A stretch of 64,000 bases of DNA, taken from NCBI RefSeq assembly GCF_963506605.1, contig NC_083288.1, forward strand, positions 38,812,001 to 38,876,000, given 5' to 3'. Position 1 is the stretch's first letter. Every line of letters begins with the position of its first letter. The stretch is from Zootoca vivipara (taxonomy: Eukaryota). The position numbers and the translations under genes were made by a program. The notes beneath the pieces are model-generated. The model was not told the origin of the DNA and ran no database searches. It saw nothing but the letters and a program-made list of their open reading frames with translations. This document shows positions 10,848 to 62,517 of the stretch, piece after piece.

Positions 10848-13759
10848 TTCTAGGTGATGCAGGGATCATTTTGCAGAAATGAGTGCAACTAGCCAAATGC
10901 TATATCCTAGGCTACTTTTATTTTTTATACATAAAAACACGCCACCTACATGCCTGGTTCAGTTTGGACTGAAGCTCTTGTTTGAAACATGAAGTATTGG
11001 AAAAGTGTAGTAGTCCTTACTCTTGCCTTTTATACGCCACTCTCTACATATTCACAAATTGAATTGGGTGGCAAAAGCGCTTAGGAAATCGGGAATCCTG
11101 CAGTTTTCAATCTAATTTGGGATTGTGTCTCCCAGCTTTTTAAAATGGTTTTATTTTTATATTTTTAACACACAAAGATACATGATGTCTTTGAGGTGGT
11201 ACCAAATTATCCAAAAGACTGAGATGGATCTCTAATGTCCAATATTCTTGATGAGCTGTTTTGTATTTTTTTAAAAAACAAAACAAAACCTGGTAGATCA
11301 ATAATGGTTCCCAATTGTCCAAAAAACAGAATCCCTGTGGTAGTTTATAGCAAGTGATTTTTACTGTTAACTGACCTTTGCCAAACGGGAGCCAGTCCTT
11401 CAGAGGAGGCAAACTGACTTTTCCCATATTTTGTAATCAGAATATACACTGTAACACATAGATAATTTAGTAAATATTGATGCTTTTATAATATGTTGCC
11501 AAAATATTCCCAATAACATAATTTCTGGTCTCAAAAGTAATACTTGTAAAAAAAAAGTTAAAGCAAGAGGTTTCCAAATGATAGCTGTCATTGGAAAGTA
11601 GTTATCACATACCGTATTAGGAATGCTGTTTTTTTTTAATTGCCATGTGAACATCCCGAAGCTGCTAATGCTACAATCCTAATTCAATGGGACTTACTCC
11701 CAAGTAAGTGGGTATAGTATTGCATCTTAAACGGCACATCCTCTTTAAACTCCATGGTGTTGATACGAAAAAATAATAAAAATTATTTCCGGGTTGAATA
11801 TCCACTGAGATTTCTAAAGCCCCAACACAGATTTCAACCTAGTCCCAAGTTAGATCTATTGATTTAACTGGCCTTGTTCTGTGTGTGACTAAAATTGGAT
11901 ACCATCCTATAACAATTTATTGTATAGTGAAAACGATTTTATAAACCCTTGGTGAAAACTTTCTGAGGTGTTGTCCTCATAATACATCCTCAGGAGTTCT
12001 TCTACATACTGGCATGTTTCCATTTGTTCCTTCAGAACCGGATGTCATTCATGGAATGTGTGGCTTTTTTCCTTTTATGATGAAAATAAAAGTTATCTGA
12101 AAGAAACGTCACAGATGAAGGCATTTTAATGAATTGTTTTAAGAACAGAAGAATCTAGTTCCAGAACACAATCAGCAAAGCTTGCATTTGTGTCTGCAAC
12201 AAGTGGAGCTACGTACAGCAGTGATGGAGAACTAATGCTTTAGGTCATGCTAGACCTATAGTCTGACTTAAATGTAAGGCAACATCGTATGGTTATCAGT
12301 TTATAGATAACTGGTTGTTTTTTACCAGCACACACACACACAAACCTATCAAGCTGCACTCCAATCCAGAAGTCCAAAACTTCCATGGGTTCATACATCC
12401 TTTTTAATATATTGGGGACGACGGATGGACGGACGGACACACACACACTCGTCATCACTTATGACAGTGGGACCTATGGAAGCAGTTTAAAAATGACAAA
12501 TACAGAGGAATCTTGGGGAGGGGGCTGGATACATCCTGTGGGCTGCAGGTTAGCTATCCCTGCTACACAGCATAGTAGTTTAAATAAATTAAAAGTTATA
12601 TATTCACAATAACAAATTGGCTTGATCAAAGATGCTAGTACTCAATATAGCTACAATTTTGCTAAAAATCCTTGTGTGTTTAGGACTGCAGCATTAACTT
12701 GGTTTATCCTCAGAATAAGTGAGAGGGTATCCTAGGTATTTGTTTTTCCCACTGCAGCCAATTAGTCCATGGCAAGAGGTAGGACTTGAATATAGGCCTC
12801 TCACGTATTAAGTCAAGTAGACATTGCAGCATGCTGTCTCTCTGTCCCCATTCTTTTAAATTTGTTGGACAGGCCCAATCCTGAACCATCTATCCAGAAT
12901 GGAAGTGAAGAAGAGCAAATATTTGTAAATGCCACCCCCTTATTTTATTTAGAAATCAACTGTGACTTATAGCTATCAAAGCAATAAAGACAGTAATAAA
13001 AAACATAAGAGCAGGTAAAAATGAGTTTATAAGCAGGTAGCTCAAGGCTTTAGCATGAACCTAAAAGGTTTATTCAAAAGTAACCTCCATTAAGTTCAAT
13101 AGGGTTTACTGCCAGCTGTGTGTGTAGGATTATAGCCTCGACCACATGAACATGAAAAGGTCTATGCTACATCTAAAATGAAAATACTGGTTTTGAAATA
13201 AGTCTCATGTTTGCTTTAAATGCCAATGAGTTTTTCCCTCTTCCTTTGCCAAGTTAGCCAGGCCCACTTTTGCATGTAACCTCAAAATTTGGAATTGGTT
13301 CCCTTTGGAGAAATCATGATTTCAAACTCAAAACTCATTGAAGCTCTGGAGTTCCGAATGCAGATTTATCAGTGCACTAGAAGTTTGTTGAATTCACAGC
13401 TTTTATGGTTTTGAAATGAGATCGAAATGTTGTCAACAACGTCTTGTAAACCTCGTTTCGCGCAACGGTGCCCATGTAAACAATATTCATTGAAAGTTTC
13501 CTGACTTTCAAAGTCGCATCTGAAGTATCTGCCAGTCCTAGGGGAAGTGCATGTTTTCACGAGCCAAAGCAGCCTCTTCTCATTCATAAGCGCGGTGTGC
13601 ACCTTGTTTTGAGCACCTTCGAATGGTCGCGCCAGCCCGCCCAGCGAACAATTGGAAGAATTTTTCAGGAAAGACAAATCGAGTCCTCCCTCCCACCGTC
13701 CGAAAGAGAACGGGAGACTCCAACCCCCAGCATACCCCAGGACTCCATATCCCAGCATG

Positions 13760-14850
13760 CACTTCACTCGCGATGGCCTTTCCCTCGTCCCGCGGGCTCG
13801 CAGTCCCGCATCCCAATCTATCTGATTGTGAGGGAGAAGACCTCCATTTTCCGCAGTTCTTCTGGCCCGCGGCCTCTCGCCGGGACGCCGTCCTCCTGCG
13901 TGACGCGTCTGTGAGACACTTTGGGTTTGAGTTTCTTTTCTCTTTCTCCACGCACGCACACCCTCCTTCGCGTTATCCAAGCTCTCGCGAGACTTGTACG
14001 CCGAGGCCGGCGGGTGGAGGGAGCGGTGGGAGGAGGGAGGGGCTGGCCCTGGCGCTTGGTGGTGGCGGCCGCCATTTTGCCGCGGCGGGTCGGGTCTGGC
14101 TCGGCGGGGCCTGGTTAGGGATCAGCATCCGGGTGGGAGGGGTGGGCGACGTGCCGAGGAGCACCGGCGAAGGCCGCGCAAAGGGAGAAGTCGCGCGGGA
14201 GAGGCCTGGGGGCCACGGATGGCGGCGGATTCTCTCCGGCCGAGGCGGCGGCGCTGGGGCTGAGGCGGCGGCAGGAGGAGGCGGGGCAGGAGGCGCCTCC
14301 CCTCCCTCCTCACTCCTCCCCCCTCCCACCCAGGTAAGATGGCGGACCGGCCGGGGCTCTACTCCACTCGCTCACACCCACCTTCCTGGAGGGGTGCAAG
14401 TCTCTGCTTCGAGTCGGGAGGGAAAAGTGAGGAAACAGATAAGAGCGCGCGCGTGTGCCTGGTTGCCGGTGGTCGCGCGCTCGCGCGGCCTTTTACCTCC
14501 CCCGTCCCTTCCTCTCTTCCATCGGCCATCGGCCATTTCCCTCCCCTGCCTATAGAGGGCGCACTAATGGAGAGTGGCGGGGCGGGAAATAAAGAGAAAG
14601 GAGCCAATGTGGGAGCCGCACGCGCTTACCCAGCCAACGGCCGCTCTCAGTGCTGGCCTATTATTACTTCACCTATCGCCCTCCCCCCCCCCCCGTCACC
14701 TCGTTTCCTTGCGCGCGCCGCGAAACCGACCAACCAACGGCCGCCTACTCCTCAGTGGGTGGGGGAGGGGCGAGCGGGGATTCTCGGGGGACTAAGGAGG
14801 GAGGGCTAGGGAGGGAGGCGTTTGGGGGAAACCGGGGCGGGGTCAAGGGG
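13760..14850. promoter_or_regulatory. CpG island / SRCAP promoter
   Basis: Dense CpG. TCTCGCGAGA palindrome (BANP/ZBTB33 motif) at 13983-13992; YY1 motifs CCGCCATTTT at 14069-14078 and AAGATGGCGG at 14336-14345; GC boxes; CCAAT at 14604. Confidence 0.9.
14050..14333 (+). other. SRCAP: SRCAP exon 1 (5' leader; start approximate)
   Basis: Strong donor CAG|GTAAGA at 14333/14334 inside the CpG island; the TSS cannot be determined from sequence. Confidence 0.7.
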
Positions 14851-15218
14851 TCAAAGGGAAAAGGTGGGAGGGAAAGGGTGTTAAAGGGTGGGGAAAATTA
14901 AAGGGCATCGAACTTGTGCTGAAAAAGAAAGAAACTAGGGGTCAGAGGGGGAATCGCTTGCGGTTAGGGTGCAATGAATGAATAAATGCAGGATTGCGGG
15001 TACAAGGATTGATTTTTAGCGGGGCGCAAGGGTTCTGCTAAAGTGTGGCAAGTTCAAAGGGTATTCGGGTATCATCTGGGACTTGAGCGGTTGCACTGCT
15101 CTAGGGTTTGAGTGGCTAGGGATAATACTTGAAAAGTTGGGAGTGGGTTGCAGTTACTTAGCACCATCAAAGTTTTGCAAGAAACCAGACCAGAAATAAG
15201 TGAAAGGTTAATGTAGTC

Positions 15219-18200
15219 ATGGAGTCTGAGGAGGGGCAGGCTGAAGCTCAGGATGATAGGAAGGGAGAGGAGGCTGTAGTGAATGAAGAAACCACAGTGG
15301 AAGGACTTCCCAATGAGGCAGAGAGAAAGATATCTGGATTGCTTCCAGAGACAGGTGTGGGACAGGGGGAGGCTAAAGACTCAGAGGCAAGTGAGGGGGA
15401 GGCTAAAGACTCAGAGGCAAGTGAGGGGGAGGCTAAAGACTCAGAGGCGAGTGAGGGGAAGGTTGAGGACTTGCTGGAGGCAAGTCAGGGGGAGACAGAG
15501 GAGGAGGTTGAAAAAGAACATGAGGCACCAGCTACTGGAGAATTGATGGAACCAGACCAGGATACATTTGAACCCTTAGCAGAACTGGATAGGGGGGTGG
15601 CTGAGGATGCACTGAAAGGAGATGTGGCATTAGATATGTCTGGGGAAGAGGCTGAGGAGATTATTGAACCAGATCTGGGAAAAGCAGAAGAATTGGAGAC
15701 AGTGGTTCTTGAGGCAATTCAACACCAGAGTAATAGAGAGAAAGAAGAAGCTGAAGAGTCAAGTGAACCAAATCAGGAGGAAATCAGTGTTTCCGGGAGC
15801 CCAGACGAGGGGGAAGCTGAGGGGAAGACTGGAAAAGGAATGGATCAGCAGGAGACAGAGGAATTTATTCATGAGGAAGAAGCACTGGTGGGAGAGGGTG
15901 AAATGGTTCTAGAAATGGGGGGACATGGGACTGAAGAGTTGGCAGGGCCGGACCATGGGAAAGAAGAGGATTTGGTAGAAGAGGACCGTGTAGATTCTGG
16001 AGAGAGGGTTGAAAAGGGAGATGAACAGCAAAAGTTGATGGGACTGCAAGAGGGGGAAGCTGAGGCAACTGTTAGAGACGATGAGGCAGTGGAGGAGGCT
16101 GAAAAGATGCCAGAGTCTGTGGAGCTGGGAGAGAGTGACAAAGAAGTTGGTGAATCAACAGAGGATAAGGGGAAGATGGATGAATTGTCAGGGCTGGGTC
16201 AAGGGGAGATCCTAGAGGTCACCGGAAAGGAAGAGGATGTGGTACCTGCAATGGACTATAAAGAAACTGAGAAGGTGTCAGGTGTAAATGAGAGAGAGCT
16301 AGAGGAAGTGACTGCAGAGGAAGATGCAATATTAGCAAGGGGCCAGGAGGAGTTGGTAGGACTAGGTCAGGGGGAAATTGAGGTGTTGAGTGGAGAGGAG
16401 GAACCAGTTTTGGATAAGAGGGAGGCGGAGATGACAGTTGGACCAGGTGAGGAGGGGCTTGGTGAGGAAATTGAAAGGGAAGATAGGGTATCTGGGGTAG
16501 ATCAGAGAGAGGCTGAAAGCATGATTGTGGAAGGGGATGTGGTATCAGCAGAGGGTTGGGGGGAGGTTGAAGACTCGGTGAAGTCAAGCAGGGGAGAGGC
16601 AGAGGAGGTGGCACCATCAATGGATCAAGTTAAAGCTGAAGCCCTACAGGAAGATCTGAGGGAGTCAGAGTTGGTGATTGCTGAGGGAGAGGCAGGCGCA
16701 TCTGAGGAGAAGGCTGAGCATTTGGTGGTGGCAAGTCAGGAAGAAGTTGAGGGTGAGACTGAAAAAGAGAGTATGCCATCAACACTAGATCAGGGGTCAC
16801 CAGGAATAGATGAAAGGCAGGTAGAGGAGGTGACTACAGAGAAAGATGTGGAATCAGTAGAAGATCAAAAGCAAGTTGAGGATTTGGCTGGGATAAGTCA
16901 GGGTGAGATTGGCGATATGGTAGCCACAGTGGAGGAAGGGGAAGCTGAAAAAGTGCTAGGGGAAGATAAGAGGGAGGCAGAGGTGTCAATTTCAAAGGGA
17001 GATGCGGCATTTATTGAGGGGGAGGGTTTGGTAGTGACAAGTCAGGAAGAGACTGAGGAGGTGACTGTCAAGGAGGATATGATAAAAGTGGCTATTGATG
17101 TGGCTGAGCAAGTGATAGGAGCAGCTCAGAGGGAAACAGAAGAGATGACTGCAATGGGTCAGGAAGAAGGAAGGGAGGAGGCGGTGGGAGCACCAGAGAG
17201 AATAGCTGGAACACAAGAAGAAACTGGAGGTCTGGAGGAAGTACTTGTGCAAAGTCAGGAGATGGGGGCTGAGGAAGAGGTGAAACTAGGAACTAGTCAG
17301 GAGAAAGTTGGAGATCTAGCAGAACCAGAACAAAGGGAGACAAAAGAGCATGTAGGACTTGATCAGGAAGAAGCCAGGCAGTTGGGTTCAACTGAGATGG
17401 TTACTAGGGAGGAATCTCGAGAAAAAAAAGAGGCATTAGTTGGGGATCAGAGTGATACTAAGGTGCTGGTGGAACCATTTCAAGGACCAGTAGTGGAGGT
17501 TACAAGTGTAGGAGAGATTGTATTGGCTGAGCAGCATCAAGGTACTCTGGGAAGAAAGGTATCCTCTCAGGAGAAGACATTAATTTGGAGCCCAGAATTA
17601 GAAGAACAGTTGGGAGGACCAACTCAGGAGATGGCAGGCGTGCCTTCCAGGGAGGTGATATTGAGTCAAAGGGCAAGACCAATTGAAGAAGATACCAGAG
17701 TAACCTGGTTGGCATCTGATACGAACCTGGCCCGAGGTCGAGTGGAATCAAGCCTGAAGGTGGCTGAATTGAAAAAATCAGGTTCCTCAGTGCTATCATC
17801 ACATTTTTCACAGCGTACTGCCATAGGAAGTCAAGAGGAACGTCGCAAGTTGAAGGGGAAAATAATTTCAGGGTTGGCAGGATTACGGCAAGGGCCAATA
17901 CTGGTACCACATCAAGGGGCAACACGCTCATGTGGATTCCGTCGTGGAGTGCTGGAGCACAGGGCTCCAGGGTTGATTGTGACCAGTTTAACAGCGATGG
18001 CTCAGCAAAAGGGAATGGTTAAGGAGGCTTCTACGCAACTGGGAAAGGGTGAATTAGATCAGAGGGAGACACGATCAGCTGAATTGAGGTCTCGTGCAAT
18101 TAGGGTTAAAGTGGGTGAGCCAGTGGTTATGATGGGGTACAGAATTGGACGGGAAGGGATGTCATGTTTCTCTGAGGCAGATAACAGGATAGAGGGCTTT

Positions 18201-19049
18201 CAGCATGTTCCTATGATGGAGGAGGCAGGGAAGGAACCTGATCAGACCCCAGCAGAACTACCGAGGCAGGAAGAGAAAGTTAAGGAGTTGGAGACACTGG
18301 CCAAGGATGTTGATGACAGAGCAAGGCAACATCCAGAAGGAATGTACTTGCCATGGCTTGGTAGGCCACTAACACAAGATTATGCGACAATACGACCAGG
18401 TTCTGGTTGGACTGCAGGCCTTGGGTCTGGGCATGGACTTGCTTTAGGGCCATTGCGGGCTGGAATAAAAGAACGAATAAACATGATGGTGACAGGTCAG
18501 GGAGCAGTAAAGTCAGGAGGACCAAGTCCTGAGCCACCAGTGTCTGGGATGGGAAGAAGGGTGTTTGGGCTTACAAGCCAATCAGGCAATGTACACTGGG
18601 TGAAGGACGTATTGGGATCTAAGCAGACAGTCTCTCGACTCTCTGTAACAGTTTGTGGCTCAAAAGCAAGCAGTCCTGACTCTATGGCAGGGAGACGAAG
18701 TCCAGGCGTATTAACAGGAAAGCAAGAGTTGAAAGATTGGCGGGATGGGGTAATGGGAATTGCAATTAAAAGGTATAATGCCATGAGGCGGGCAATGTGG
18801 GGTGAAGGCCCAGCTGGTTTGCATGTGAAGGGGGTGAAGGTGGCTGAAATTTCCAATGGTATTCCATTGAGTTCTGTTAAGACTAGTTCCATTCTGGGGC
18901 AGGTTGAACAGAGGGCGCTGAGGCTGGCACAACATGTGGAGGGTGAGGCTGTGTCAGGATTGGAAGTAGAAGGGCAGGGGCTGGCTGATAGGCTGAAGCA
19001 GGATATGGAGTCAGCAGGGTCAGGCCAGGGAGGTAGAATTACAAGGTAA
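15219..19049 (+). CDS. 1276-aa Glu/Gly-rich ORF in SRCAP intron 1; probable giant alternative coding exon (15219-19045) spliced in frame to SRCAP
   Basis: 3.8-kb uninterrupted ORF with a strong Kozak context (gtcATGG). The stop TAA lies inside the donor AAG|GTAACT, and the phase-2 junction to exon 19805 keeps the frame open to the SRCAP ATG at 21136. Confidence 0.75.
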   Translation: MESEEGQAEAQDDRKGEEAVVNEETTVEGLPNEAERKISGLLPETGVGQGEAKDSEASEGEAKDSEASEGEAKDSEASEGKVEDLLEASQGETEEEVEKEHEAPATGELMEPDQDTFEPLAELDRGVAEDALKGDVALDMSGEEAEEIIEPDLGKAEELETVVLEAIQHQSNREKEEAEESSEPNQEEISVSGSPDEGEAEGKTGKGMDQQETEEFIHEEEALVGEGEMVLEMGGHGTEELAGPDHGKEEDLVEEDRVDSGERVEKGDEQQKLMGLQEGEAEATVRDDEAVEEAEKMPESVELGESDKEVGESTEDKGKMDELSGLGQGEILEVTGKEEDVVPAMDYKETEKVSGVNERELEEVTAEEDAILARGQEELVGLGQGEIEVLSGEEEPVLDKREAEMTVGPGEEGLGEEIEREDRVSGVDQREAESMIVEGDVVSAEGWGEVEDSVKSSRGEAEEVAPSMDQVKAEALQEDLRESELVIAEGEAGASEEKAEHLVVASQEEVEGETEKESMPSTLDQGSPGIDERQVEEVTTEKDVESVEDQKQVEDLAGISQGEIGDMVATVEEGEAEKVLGEDKREAEVSISKGDAAFIEGEGLVVTSQEETEEVTVKEDMIKVAIDVAEQVIGAAQRETEEMTAMGQEEGREEAVGAPERIAGTQEETGGLEEVLVQSQEMGAEEEVKLGTSQEKVGDLAEPEQRETKEHVGLDQEEARQLGSTEMVTREESREKKEALVGDQSDTKVLVEPFQGPVVEVTSVGEIVLAEQHQGTLGRKVSSQEKTLIWSPELEEQLGGPTQEMAGVPSREVILSQRARPIEEDTRVTWLASDTNLARGRVESSLKVAELKKSGSSVLSSHFSQRTAIGSQEERRKLKGKIISGLAGLRQGPILVPHQGATRSCGFRRGVLEHRAPGLIVTSLTAMAQQKGMVKEASTQLGKGELDQRETRSAELRSRAIRVKVGEPVVMMGYRIGREGMSCFSEADNRIEGFQHVPMMEEAGKEPDQTPAELPRQEEKVKELETLAKDVDDRARQHPEGMYLPWLGRPLTQDYATIRPGSGWTAGLGSGHGLALGPLRAGIKERINMMVTGQGAVKSGGPSPEPPVSGMGRRVFGLTSQSGNVHWVKDVLGSKQTVSRLSVTVCGSKASSPDSMAGRRSPGVLTGKQELKDWRDGVMGIAIKRYNAMRRAMWGEGPAGLHVKGVKVAEISNGIPLSSVKTSSILGQVEQRALRLAQHVEGEAVSGLEVEGQGLADRLKQDMESAGSGQGGRITR
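15366..15455 (+). repeat. 30-bp coding tandem repeat x3 (GEAKDSEASE)
   Basis: ggggaggctaaagactcagaggcaagtgag repeated three times, in frame. Confidence 0.95.
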
Positions 19050-19514
19050 CTGGGTTAAGTGTGGAGTGAGAGGGAAGGAACAAAAGATTTGGGAGATAGT
19101 GGGTTATTTATGAGCTAGGGACAAAATTGAGCTATAGAAGCAGAGAGTTAATAGGACACTATTAGCAATAGAGTTGAGTTGCAAAATCTCAGCTAGCAGG
19201 ATGCATGGGTTGTAGATATCTCTCAAAAGAATGAAGCCAAGAAGGGAAGTAAAGTCTGGGATAATGATATCAGGGTGACATGCAGAATATTCACGCTTCT
19301 GAAGCAAAGGTGGGTACATAGGAAGCAAAATAAAAGGCAAAATAATAATTTATTAGTTATACTCCACTCATCCAGCCAGGTCACCCCAGATACTGAGAAT
19401 ATTTTGGGCTCTGGATACCTAGGCATGGGAGTGAGTGAAAAGGACACTGCTAGACAACTCAGAATCCATCAAGTGGGTGGGAAAGTGAGATAATTCTCCT
19501 AGTGGCTCACCAAA

Positions 19515-19649
19515 CCGCACCCCAAACAGGTTCCTGCCTCTTTTCATAGGCTTGAATTTGGTAGCTGGTGCATACAGTAAAACTCTCCACCACAACCCGT
19601 GGACAGGCTGTTCCCATGCTGTCTGCGTAACAATAAAAGAGAGACAGGG
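19515..19649 (+). ncRNA. SNORA30: H/ACA snoRNA, SNORA30/SNORA37 family
   Basis: Hairpin 1 gcac...acaggttcc...atttggtagctggtgc resembles SNORA30/37 as I recall them. H box ACAGTA at 19574-19579; hairpin 2 closed by ctctc/gagag; ACA at 19644-19646 plus 3 nt. SRCAP is the known SNORA30 host gene. Confidence 0.8.
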
Positions 19650-19737
19650 TTTGATTTACCCTATGGCAGAGTCGTTCAGGGTCCCGAGAGGAAGTTTGAA
19701 TGATCCTTACCTAAAGGAATAGGCTTCTGTGCATCTA

Positions 19738-19739
<2 letters not shown>

Positions 19740-19768
<29 letters not shown>
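19740..19768. repeat. (CA)n microsatellite
   Basis: Directly visible. Confidence 0.95.
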
Positions 19769-19769
<1 letters not shown>

Positions 19770-19804
19770 GTGTTCTCTGGACTAATAGTTCCATCTTTTT
19801 TCAG

Positions 19805-19878
19805 GTGTAGTATTCCCCAGGAAAGCGAAACCCTGGAAGTTCAGCCTGACAAGCAAGAGGAGTTCGCAGCTCACGCAG
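19805..19878 (+). other. SRCAP: SRCAP exon 2 (74 nt, nominally 5'UTR, open in the SRCAP frame)
   Basis: Acceptor tcttttttcag, donor CAG|GTACAA; reads CSIPQESETLEVQPDKQEEFAAHA with no stop. Confidence 0.75.
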
Positions 19879-21135
19879 GTACAAGTGAAATTGAATACCT
19901 TTGGGGAATTGGCAACAGGGTTTTAAGCAGGAACATCAAGCAAATCTAAATCTTTGGCTGTTTTTCTGAGCTCAGTGTTGGATTTATTTTCTTTTCAAAA
20001 TGCTTTTTCTGTCACCAACATCTATATTGATGGGCCATAATTTATTATGTACTAGAATCTGGCTTGGCTACAACTAAACTTAATTTGCTTGTTGAGCTAC
20101 TGCAGCTCAAAGGAATGAAATAAATTTTACAATATCTGTTCATAGCTCCCCTAGAAATTTTTGGAAAGTCTAGGCATTTAGTACTAAACAGTAGAATATG
20201 TATCCAGTGGAGGAAGATAGGTGAATCCTCTACTTGTAGGCAGGGTTTACATCTTTTGTGTCTAAAATATTAAAGTATCAAATGCAAACTTTGAGAGAAA
20301 ACTTTTTTTTTGTTTTCCATTTTGGAGTCACATTACCCAAACATTTATTCTGTAACAGAAAATGTATGCTTGTGTGTACAAACTTAGCAATGGAGATTTC
20401 CTAATGCTGTTGTGTTTTTGATAGCTACTGTGTTGGATATATTAATTTTCTACTGGTTTTTGCCACCAGATCTTTTGTAGATTGTAAATTAGGAGAGGCT
20501 AGCCCCTAGTTTGGGGGCCTGATCCGGCTCCCAAGCAAATTTTTCTGGGCCTCCCCTGATTTTGGCAACAGCAAAAAAAAGGAAAAAGAACCCCCCTCCC
20601 TGCACTGTAATCATTAATCAAATCATATTTATACTCACAGCTTCTTTTTTGAAAAAACATAGTGAGAAATGAGATTTGATCAGCTGGGAACTGTTTGGTT
20701 TACATTTATGCTCTTTAGTTAATAGCTGCTTTTAAGGTGCATTCCTTTCCTTCTTTAATTTTTAGTGCTTTACTTTGTGTTAAAGGAAAGTAAAATTGTA
20801 GGCAGAGGGCATACTAATGTCATTTTGACGTTTAATTTCACTTCCTCTGAAAATCTTCCTTTAGCTTGTTCTTGAGTGGGTGTCTTTCAGTTCTTTTCAG
20901 TCTGGCTCTGATCACAATGTGACTGATTTTTCCTCATGAATCTCTAGATAATTCTGAGACAGGCAGTCCCGAGCGCAGGCTGGGCTGCCAAGGAACCCAG
21001 GAGCTGGACGGCTCGTCCCAGTGGCTGGCTGAGCAGAATGAGGCCGGTTCCGAGCATGCACTGGAGCAGGAAGCCAGCACTACAACCGCAAACGAAGCTG
21101 TTGGGACGAGAGGCAAAGAGCAAGAGAGAACTAAA

Positions 21136-45143
<24,008 letters not shown>

Positions 45144-50035: not shown

Positions 50036-50551
50036 GTTTCTGAGAGGTGAGCTCCCAGCCTGCAGATGTTGGACTATTCTCAATATTTCTTCCTTCAGAG
50101 GAGCTGTACTAATGACTGAGGAACTAGACTTATTTAGGCATGAAGAGGATCACACCCTTTTGGCTTCAGGTGAATTATCAGGCGTTGGTACTTTATCATT
50201 TCTAGAACACTTTCAGCTTGTGAAAGACGTTCCTTTGAATTCCACGTTTCCTTTTGCAGCAGTCTGGTGAGGTAGGGCGATAATACGCCCAGGTATTTTA
50301 CACAAAGGAAACCTGAGGCCAAGAGCGAAAGTCACTTTCTCGGTGCTGTACAGAGAATTCACAGAAGAGGTGGGGTTTGAACCTGGCCCTCTAAAATCGA
50401 ACTCTCCACTAGCTATTTCAAGCTCCTGGCTTGGAATTTAGAAGCACAAATGTGGATTCAGATCATCACTGCTCGTGGTTCATAATTGAAATAGCAGAGA
50501 GAAAAGAGCAGGCTTGTCAGCACACCAGCAATTTTATGTGTGCCAGTTGCT

Positions 50552-52205
50552 ATGGAAGGAGAGCAGGAGCTCAAAAATGGGACCCTTCGGCAAGATGCTG
50601 CAGAGACCATCGTGATGATCCCAGCAGACACCCAGGAGAAGGACATGCCTGCCAAGCCCCCTTCTTTTCATAAACACAGACTGCGCAGCCTGGCCATATT
50701 TAGCATCATCTGTGGCTGCTCTTGCATCGGAGTCCTAGCACTGATCTATGCAGTCAAGGTGAGTTACCTGCTGCTTTGACAAGGGATGCAGGTGGGTGGG
50801 ACAAGGGGTGCCCTTCCCCAAATGAATGAAAGTGCAGTGCAGTATTTGGATCAGTTTTCTTTCTAGGGAAAGAATTAATGGAGGCTTAGGGAGGGGAAGT
50901 GGGTTCAATATTGATCATACACAGAGTAGAGCCATTTAAATGAGTGAACAATGAGTGGCAAACTTGGATCCATTAAGTCCACTAGGTCCACTGTGAGTAC
51001 ACTTTGGTTAGAGAAAACCTTGTGCCTTTCCAAATGTATTTACTGATCAGACGAAAATCCGCTGGGATCTGAACAGCTTCTGCCATTCTCTTGCCTTCCT
51101 TTCCAGATAAATAACTGTAGCTGTGCCTCCTGTGTCCTTGCAAGTGTGCTCTTTAAACCAAAACAGAATGGGCAGCCGGACAAATGGGCAGCTCAAAAAT
51201 TAAAGGCATGCCAAAGTTATGTTAGGCGATGTAAAAAGTGACTGAGAACCAGTGATGTAGTATACCCAGGGTTGTCATATCAATGAAACAAAATGATAGA
51301 TCCACATATTAAATGGGGTGCGTGTGTGAGATGTTTCCTGAGCACAGCATTGCAGTCGTGGGCAGGAGCCACCTCACTGCCCCACCCAGGCCAATATTTA
51401 CTGCCTTGAAAGCTCCCACACATTATTGTCACGTGGTGAAACTGCAGCGAATGCTCGGTGGAGATGTACAATCTGAAACCAAGGCACGGCAATCGTTGCG
51501 TTCCATCTGGCAATGAGAGTCTGCTCCAGAGAACCCTTGGGATTCCTCAACAAGGCCAGAGGTGGTGGACGAGATTCCCTGAGAGGACTTGCCACCACTA
51601 CTGATCTTCTTCCCCTGCAATGTGCAGCCAGAAAGGGATGTTGGAGGTGTTCTGGGCCATGCCTTCCCTCTGACAGCCGAGCCACCCCACCTGAACTGTG
51701 AAAGGAGCCCTAGAGTCCCCAGCAAGACAGGCATTATGTGACAGAGGCCAGATATTCCTGGAAAGTTGGCCCCTTGAAGTCAGCAGATCCAGAAGTGCCA
51801 GGTCCCTTCATGAGAGTCGTAGCCATGCCCCTTCATGTCCATACGCCCCTTCTAAGATTATACAACAAGCTTAGATAGCTTTAATCTGGGTCAAGGCTAC
51901 TAAGATCAGAGGTTGCAAAGAAATTTAGACCTGATGTAAGTCCAGAGGAGGAGACCTAAAATGTAAGTTGTTTTTTTTAAAAATAAAATAAAAATAAGTG
52001 ACATCAATAATGAGCTTCTCTCTCTTGGTTTTGTCCCATCCAGGCTAGTGAGAAGCAAAAGGCTGGTTCCCAGGTATCAGCGGCTGACTGGGCTCGGAGG
52101 TCCCGGAGATTGTCTGTCTTAAGTATCAGTGTCTGGGTGTCCCTCATCATTCTGGTGCCCGTGTCAGTGTACCTCATTTCCTACCTCTTAACTCAAGCCG
52201 AATGA
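50552..52205 (+). CDS. TMEM265: Transmembrane protein 265 (CD225/dispanin family), 122 aa
   Basis: Exons 50552-50758 and 52044-52205: LRSLAIFSIICGCSCIGVLALIYAVK|ASEKQKAG...ARRSRRLSVLSISVWVSLIIL...; lies between SRCAP and PHKG2 as in human. Confidence 0.88.

Positions 52206-58653: not shown

Positions 58654-62517
<3,864 letters not shown>

Follow-up and report, generated by a model that had tools for sequence, protein, structure and literature searches.

A squamate-restricted open reading frame in the first intron of SRCAP in Zootoca vivipara and its probable place on a conjoined SRCAP transcript

The 64,000-nucleotide (nt) stretch of the Zootoca vivipara genome analysed here (contig NC_083288.1, positions 38,812,001 to 38,876,000; hereafter the window) carries a gene identified from its sequence as SRCAP and, within the first intron of this gene, an open reading frame (ORF) of 1276 codons. 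The ORF is best described as encoding a predicted stand-alone protein of 1276 residues that is confined to squamates, and it probably resides on an alternative 5′ exon of a conjoined SRCAP transcript of bicistronic type. Conservation of the ORF, its transcription, and the joining of its exon to SRCAP were observed, the latter two in RNA of a related lacertid. A preliminary description of the window had read the same ORF as a hidden coding exon that extends SRCAP itself by 1363 residues. All positions refer to the window, and the coordinates of the individual features are collected in Table 1.

Coding capacity and conservation of the open reading frame

The frame of the ORF is free of stops from 15204 to 19046 and is preceded by an in-frame TGA at 15201; the start ATG has G at both −3 and +4. 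Each of the other two forward frames is interrupted about a hundred times. Shuffling the region 2000 times never produced an open run longer than 193 codons, whereas the observed run spans 1281. The ORF is therefore far beyond chance and, given the conservation described below, is regarded as a real protein-coding gene. Strong codon periodicity is apparent, with G at 51% of first positions and C at 5.6% of third positions. The low proportion of C at the third position fits a loss of CpG ahead of codons that start with G.

The possibility that there is no gene at all, i.e. that a purine-rich, T-poor stretch is open by accident and was propagated by automatic gene callers, is regarded as highly improbable. 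The region around the ORF is indeed strongly purine-skewed and T-poor, and the product lacks matches in Pfam, PDB, and ESM Atlas and is modelled with low confidence (see below). Moreover, the ORF (5.4%) is no less divergent from a close relative (organism A, approximately 94.6% identical) than the intron (4.5%), and the ORF holds at least 38 differences from organism A, those listed lying in its N-terminal part and falling 14/9/15 on the three codon positions. Conversely, accidental openness is difficult to reconcile with the stop statistics given above and with a frame, start, end, and long motifs that are kept in lizards and snakes. The ORF indels relative to organism A (60, 12, 2+1, 12, 21, 15, and +3 nt) all preserve the frame, and one indel just beyond the ORF is 1 nt long.

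Homologues were sought in two ways: 5.8 billion proteins were queried by word index, and 1.84 billion representatives were scanned exhaustively with HMMER. Both returned homologues from Squamata only, in agreement with the lineage restriction proposed earlier, and the HMMER scan found no homologue outside Squamata among the representative proteins. The 1276-residue product of the window is itself already present in NCBI and UniRef. Lacertid homologues were found in Podarcis lilfordi and P. muralis (1233–1235 residues, 85–92% identity), iguanian homologues in Anolis sagrei and Phrynocephalus forsythii, and snake homologues in Candoia aspera, Notechis scutatus, Pseudonaja textilis, Thamnophis elegans, and Micrurus lemniscatus. 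Two snake proteins on Logan contigs (P0012, P0013) and one short ENA fragment complete the family. All 19 database family proteins are stand-alone models of 882–1363 residues, several of them named simply as uncharacterized proteins, and most terminate at the same Arg-stop. Among them are the orthologous RefSeq models LOC114583697 (Podarcis muralis), LOC113443587 (Pseudonaja textilis), LOC113421704 (Notechis scutatus), and LOC134495752 (Candoia aspera), which carry no described function. These share the start and mostly also the end of the window ORF, with 36–85% identity at full length in the initial search and 46–92% over the conserved C-terminal part.

The reading frame is preserved in lacertids, iguanians, and snakes, and the start MEPEEG is common to lacertids and snakes. 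Conserved blocks in the C-terminal part occur in all homologues. Between lizards and snakes, the C-terminal 500 residues are 46–63% identical and the acidic N-terminal part 21–41%. More than 120 columns are invariant across lizards and snakes (alignments A1 and A2), and long identical motifs include GLAGLRQG, MGYRIGRE, WLGRP, and ELKDWRDGVMG..AI.RYNAMR. The composition of the product is divided along similar lines. Residues 1–780 are acidic (27–35% D+E) and the last 500 or so (780–1276) are mildly basic, so that the “largely acidic” character originally ascribed to the sequence applies to the first part but not to the second, which is the conserved one. A tandem repeat within the ORF encodes units of EGEAKDSEAS (Table 1), the copy number of which differs among species: 60 nt are absent here from an RNA contig of a related lacertid (see below), and two or more units are missing in organism A and in the Podarcis proteins.

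Searches for known domains and folds gave no relative. No Pfam family was detected at E up to 1 over all 1276 residues, a PDB profile search with the product returned no relative, and the ESM Atlas provided no usable match. An AlphaFold prediction for the conserved C-terminal 509 residues, based on a 12-row alignment, reached a predicted local distance difference test score (pLDDT) of 36, too low for a structural comparison, and comprised mostly disorder plus four short helices. An identity as AKAP12 or titin was considered and rejected, as neither AKAP WSK or RII-binding elements nor Ig or FN3 families were found (Pfam at E up to 1; PDB profile). The names assigned automatically to family members (titin homolog, AKAP12-like, RP1L1, and enolase-phosphatase E1-like) are attributed to artefacts of glutamate-rich composition.

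RNA evidence for splicing of the ORF exon to SRCAP

RNA from four runs was aligned to positions 14280–20279: X1, consisting of assembled contigs from a related lacertid, and X19, X20, and X21, which are from the same species as the window and were each sampled at about 6%. Three X1 contigs describe the ORF exon. The first (4094 nt, depth 40) covers 15098–19312 and crosses both the stop and position 19045 unbroken, save for the 60-nt difference in repeat copies. The second (4920 nt, depth 39.5) begins with 25–27 nt on 19283–19309 and continues with SRCAP exon 2 from 19805, exon 3, and a further 4.8 kb. The third (515 nt, depth 5.9) is unspliced over 19283–19813 and continues to exon 2. Because the three contigs meet where spliced and unspliced forms diverge (AAAG GTG, followed by G or T), the donor at 19309/19310 is assigned to transcripts that carry the ORF exon. 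The joint was originally aligned as 19307^19803, and moving the cut by two places provides GT..AG borders; the donor sequence is also present in the window. A net indel of −120 nt in X1 corresponds to approximately 1236 residues, near the lengths of the Podarcis proteins.

The exon is thus joined to SRCAP exon 2 in X1 as the preliminary description had proposed, albeit from 19309, 264 bases past the stop, and not from 19045. The spliced X1 form retains the TAA at 19047 as well as in-frame stops at 19056, 19116, 19128, 19149, 19152, and 19194. With this TAA and six further stops retained, the X1 mRNA is therefore bicistronic in type, with 522 nt separating the ORF stop from the SRCAP ATG. As the depths of the ORF contig and the spliced contig are equal (40 versus 39.5), the data suggest that most SRCAP mRNA in the X1 sample carries the ORF exon.

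The same contigs bear on the alternative of an independent nested gene with a monocistronic mRNA, polyadenylated in the intron after the stop, for which splicing from 19309 into SRCAP would be incidental and without function. We consider this unlikely, if worth keeping in view. Annotations of at least seven species, by RefSeq and others, treat the ORF as a separate gene, two AATAAA motifs lie just past the exon (Table 1), and the contig of snake protein P0013, a 4537-bp Logan contig taken to be RNA-derived, holds an ORF of 3312 nt with about 1.2 kb to spare, all of which would suit a separate transcript. In X1, however, the spliced form has a depth of 39.5 versus 5.9 for the unspliced form, and the unspliced contig reaches exon 2 instead of ending at 19350.

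For the conjoined transcript, the arrangement we favour, the following picture is proposed. The ORF gene lies within SRCAP intron 1 on the SRCAP strand and would be transcribed as an alternative 4.2-kb 5′ exon that begins at or before 15098, past the CpG island of the SRCAP promoter. Translation would proceed from 15219 to the TAA at 19047 and yield the 1276-residue stand-alone protein, while the same RNA would run 260 nt beyond the stop, where the donor at 19309 would connect it to exons 2 and 3 of SRCAP and those that follow. Scanning ribosomes would be expected to make the upstream protein and to reach the SRCAP start rarely. Tissues that choose the ORF exon may then produce the upstream protein in place of SRCAP, with exon-1 transcripts supplying SRCAP. 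The predicted protein would combine an acidic, fast-evolving, disordered N-terminus of about 780 residues with a conserved, mildly basic C-terminal part of about 500 residues that contains short conserved motifs and a few helices. A link of this protein to chromatin can only be guessed at from its position.

Several points weigh against the conjoined arrangement. The junction RNA stems from one run of a related species, in the form of contigs that lack strand, ends, and rare forms, and ahead of the joint the spliced contig has only 25–27 nt, equal to the k−1 overlap. With more than 30 splice junctions downstream of its stop, the transcript should be a target of nonsense-mediated decay, yet it is abundant in X1. 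Furthermore, a form that makes up nearly all SRCAP mRNA in X1 leaves the source of SRCAP protein in that sample unexplained. Finally, the same-species runs X19–X21 provided 0–6 reads on the 6 kb and none on the ORF, at samples of about 6%; X21 contributed three reads joining exons 2 and 3 and one read on exon 1. Taken at face value, use of the ORF exon seems to vary by tissue or sample, being dominant in X1 and absent in X19–X21.

Separately, reads from X19 aligned to 19341–19680 with 90–99% likeness, four of them with unrelated sequence before 19341. This segment is probably a dispersed intronic repeat, with the X19 reads deriving from other copies.

The splice-site-like stop codon and a hypothetical fused SRCAP

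The stop of the ORF does form part of a 5′ splice-site-like sequence, as reported: the last codons read ACA AGG TAA, which places AAG/GTAACT at 19045/19046. The arithmetic of the proposed extension is likewise correct (3827+74+188 = 4089 nt, or 1363 codons), and the joined path is free of stops up to the SRCAP ATG at 21136. The giant in-frame SRCAP fusion itself finds no support in the RNA, where the junction is 19309^19805 and the TAA at 19047 is retained together with six more stops. A search for a 19045^19805 junction found none in the four runs, in which same-species coverage is near nil and contigs drop rare forms. Among representative proteins, the exhaustive HMMER search revealed no giant SRCAP isoform with ORF sequence. 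When the last 100 ORF residues were used to look for junction-crossing fragments nothing scored, which is weak evidence.

If 19045 were to replace 19309 as the donor in a regulated manner, in a particular tissue or stage, the 1276 residues and 87 leader codons would be fused to SRCAP, giving a protein of approximately 4790 residues. This appears quite improbable to us, and the individual observations point in different directions. At 19045, 8 of the 9 positions agree with the donor consensus, and the phase is correct. In addition, lacertids, a boa, elapids, a colubrid, and an unplaced fragment share the Arg-stop end of the ORF even though the preceding residues vary (IT, FS, IS, VS), and a phase-2 consensus donor AG/GTRA itself reads Arg-stop. 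The terminus of the Micrurus protein, on the other hand, reads Met-stop, and the models of Anolis sagrei and Phrynocephalus have different ends. The Micrurus protein and snake protein P0013 end at the same stop as the window ORF; from its accession type, the UniProt entry of Micrurus lemniscatus is taken to be transcriptome-derived. No database protein extends beyond the stop.

Comparison with other candidate donors does not single out 19045. With a crude weight matrix, our own approximation from textbook frequencies, it ranked 6th among 230 GT sites and the donor at 19309 ranked 2nd, so that five further GT sites of the exon have equal or higher scores. Donor look-alikes of the GGTGAG type are frequent in the purine-rich ORF exon. 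The leader provided by exons 2 and 3 (262 nt) is open in the ATG frame, as a fusion would need, and also in a second frame; with two of three frames open and P = 0.035 from shuffles, the openness is weak evidence for a fusion. Over the 104 nt made up of exon 2 and the initial 30 nt of exon 3, there are 0 differences from organism A, to be compared with 5.4% in the ORF and 4.5% in the intron. This alignment suggests a constraint on the nucleotide sequence of the leader, a further point in favour of the fused form. The fused form would also sidestep the problem of nonsense-mediated decay. Still, the 19045^19805 junction is absent from all runs examined, and the X1 contig passes unbroken over 19045 at a depth of 40.

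Isoforms from snakes illustrate what happens when the ORF exon is spliced onward. Elapid RefSeq isoforms X3 and X5 (…SLRADV-stop) splice from the ORF exon to a downstream exon and encounter a stop two codons later, which argues against a fusion. Among the snake homologues P0015, P0016, P0005, and P0012, elapid isoforms use an internal donor at …SLRAG/I and end in DV-stop. Another isoform pair is distinguished by an exitron, an internal stretch of about 50 residues whose removal keeps the frame, and the protein sequence of a snake Logan contig diverges past …RSAGG. The internal donor, the exitron, and this divergence indicate alternative splicing within the ORF exon in snakes.

Were the fusion true, one exon would give rise to either a free protein or a version tethered to the remodeller, with a stop codon that doubles as a regulated 5′ splice site. 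The SRCAP N-terminus would thereby gain the conserved 500-residue module and an acidic arm.

Related arrangements and surroundings of the locus

The reading frame of the GNAS XL exon (XL-alpha-s/ALEX) continues into the shared exons of its host gene. This exon resembles the model of the preliminary description in being a very large alternative 5′ exon that has a start of its own, encodes a long disordered sequence, and is spliced to host exon 2. The junction in the window differs in keeping the stop and producing no fusion, and there is no sign of imprinting or of a second-frame protein. Bicistronic or conjoined vertebrate transcripts are represented by SNURF-SNRPN, in which SNURF has 71 codons, and by RefSeq read-through loci. 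Similar to SNURF-SNRPN, the favoured arrangement would place two conserved ORFs on one spliced mRNA, the upstream one translated first and its exon joined to exon 2 of the downstream gene. The upstream ORF in the window is, in contrast, 1276 codons long, located inside host intron 1, and restricted to Squamata. Acidic tracts are familiar from nucleoplasmin, NAP1, ANP32E, and the H2A.Z-binding region of Swr1/SRCAP. Only a D/E-rich composition is shared with these histone chaperones, and the acidic part of the window product is the least conserved part of the protein.

In the literature on SRCAP in squamates or in bicistronic transcripts, no description of the ORF-SRCAP arrangement was found. 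The gene itself is known as an annotated, uncharacterized one, and its link to SRCAP transcripts adds an example to the known conjoined or bicistronic arrangements, with an orphan gene nested in its host. The locus thus presents a conserved, lineage-restricted gene that is housed in the first intron of SRCAP and shares SRCAP transcripts. SRCAP is an essential remodeller that deposits H2A.Z. If exon choice trades SRCAP translation for the upstream protein, this would amount to an unusual, squamate switch on a core chromatin enzyme. The locus may further serve as a test case for decay escape of an mRNA with a 3.8-kb upstream ORF and for translation of a downstream cistron, as well as for the origin and persistence of an orphan gene within a housekeeping gene.

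In Pseudonaja textilis, the accessions of SRCAP and LOC113443587 are contiguous (XM_026711917/921 versus 711923–927; XP_026567702 versus 567708–712). Assuming that accession order equals genome order, SRCAP and LOC113443587 would be neighbours in snakes too and their linkage old. The supplement of a study on this snake (PMC10874052) lists LOC113443587 among transcripts expressed in the venom gland. In the milked venom gland, its supplementary files 1 and 2 report variants of LOC113443587 as 3–5-fold up, SRCAP transcript variant X2 as 86-fold up, and SRCAP transcript variant X1 at 0.004-fold. In these files, the opposite change of the two SRCAP variants has the appearance of an isoform switch.

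Table 1 Positions of features in and around the ORF within the window (cut sites are marked by a slash)
Feature	Position	Strand	Basis and remarks
SRCAP exon 1, 3′ end, with donor CAG/GTAAGA (14333/14334)	14300-14339	+	Sequence, composition, weight-matrix score 11.1, one X21 read
Alternative 4.2-kb 5′ exon with the whole ORF	15098-19309	+	X1 contig; 5′ limit is the contig end, true start may be further upstream
ORF	15219-19049	+	ATG to TAA, 1276 codons
30-nt tandem repeat, 4.3 copies, encoding EGEAKDSEAS units	15364-15494	+	Tandem Repeats Finder (TRF)
Proposed donor AAG/GTAACT (19045/19046), overlapping Arg-stop AGG TAA	19043-19051	+	Sequence, weight-matrix score 8.4
Used donor AAG/GTGGGT (19309/19310), joined to 19805	19307-19315	+	X1 contig, weight-matrix score 9.7
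Candidate polyadenylation signals AATAAA	19329-19334; second at 19632	+	Pattern only; the first 20 nt past the used donor
SRCAP exon 2, 74 nt, 5′ leader	19805-19878	+	Acceptor ttttttcag/G, donor CAG/GTACAA; joint and loose ends
SRCAP exon 3, with canonical ATG 21136 and donor CAG/GTAGAG	20948-21180	+	Acceptor tctctag/AT; loose-end consensus

The assignment of the host gene is based on its domains (SNF2-rel_dom, 7e-15; Helicase_C, 8e-15; a weak HSA) and on its best PDB chain, 6igm_H (Helicase SRCAP, 9e-33, versus 3e-21 for SWR1 and 3e-19 for p400). Its N-terminus reads MQSSPP, starting from the ATG at 21136. The exon 1 donor is located in a CpG-rich promoter island (approximately 13500–14800, GC content 55–73%). 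An N-terminal extension of SRCAP from exon 1 was ruled out, that frame having a stop at 14116 and no ATG. The boundaries of exons 2 and 3 agree in sequence with those given in the preliminary description, and their 19878^20948 junction is confirmed in RNA by three same-species X21 reads and an X1 contig, the overhang being identical to the first 30 letters of exon 3 (20948–20977).

Exon 3 additionally contains ATGs at 21038 and 21056 in the other open frame, which stays free of stops beyond the SRCAP ATG and up to the exon end; they possibly start an overlapping upstream ORF in the canonical SRCAP leader. A (CA)15 microsatellite occupies 19739–19768, 37 nt before the exon 2 acceptor. Downstream of SRCAP, a CD225/TMEM265-like exon (50495–50776) and PHKG2-like kinase exons (58995–61387) were identified, an arrangement that matches human 16p11.2 in gene order.

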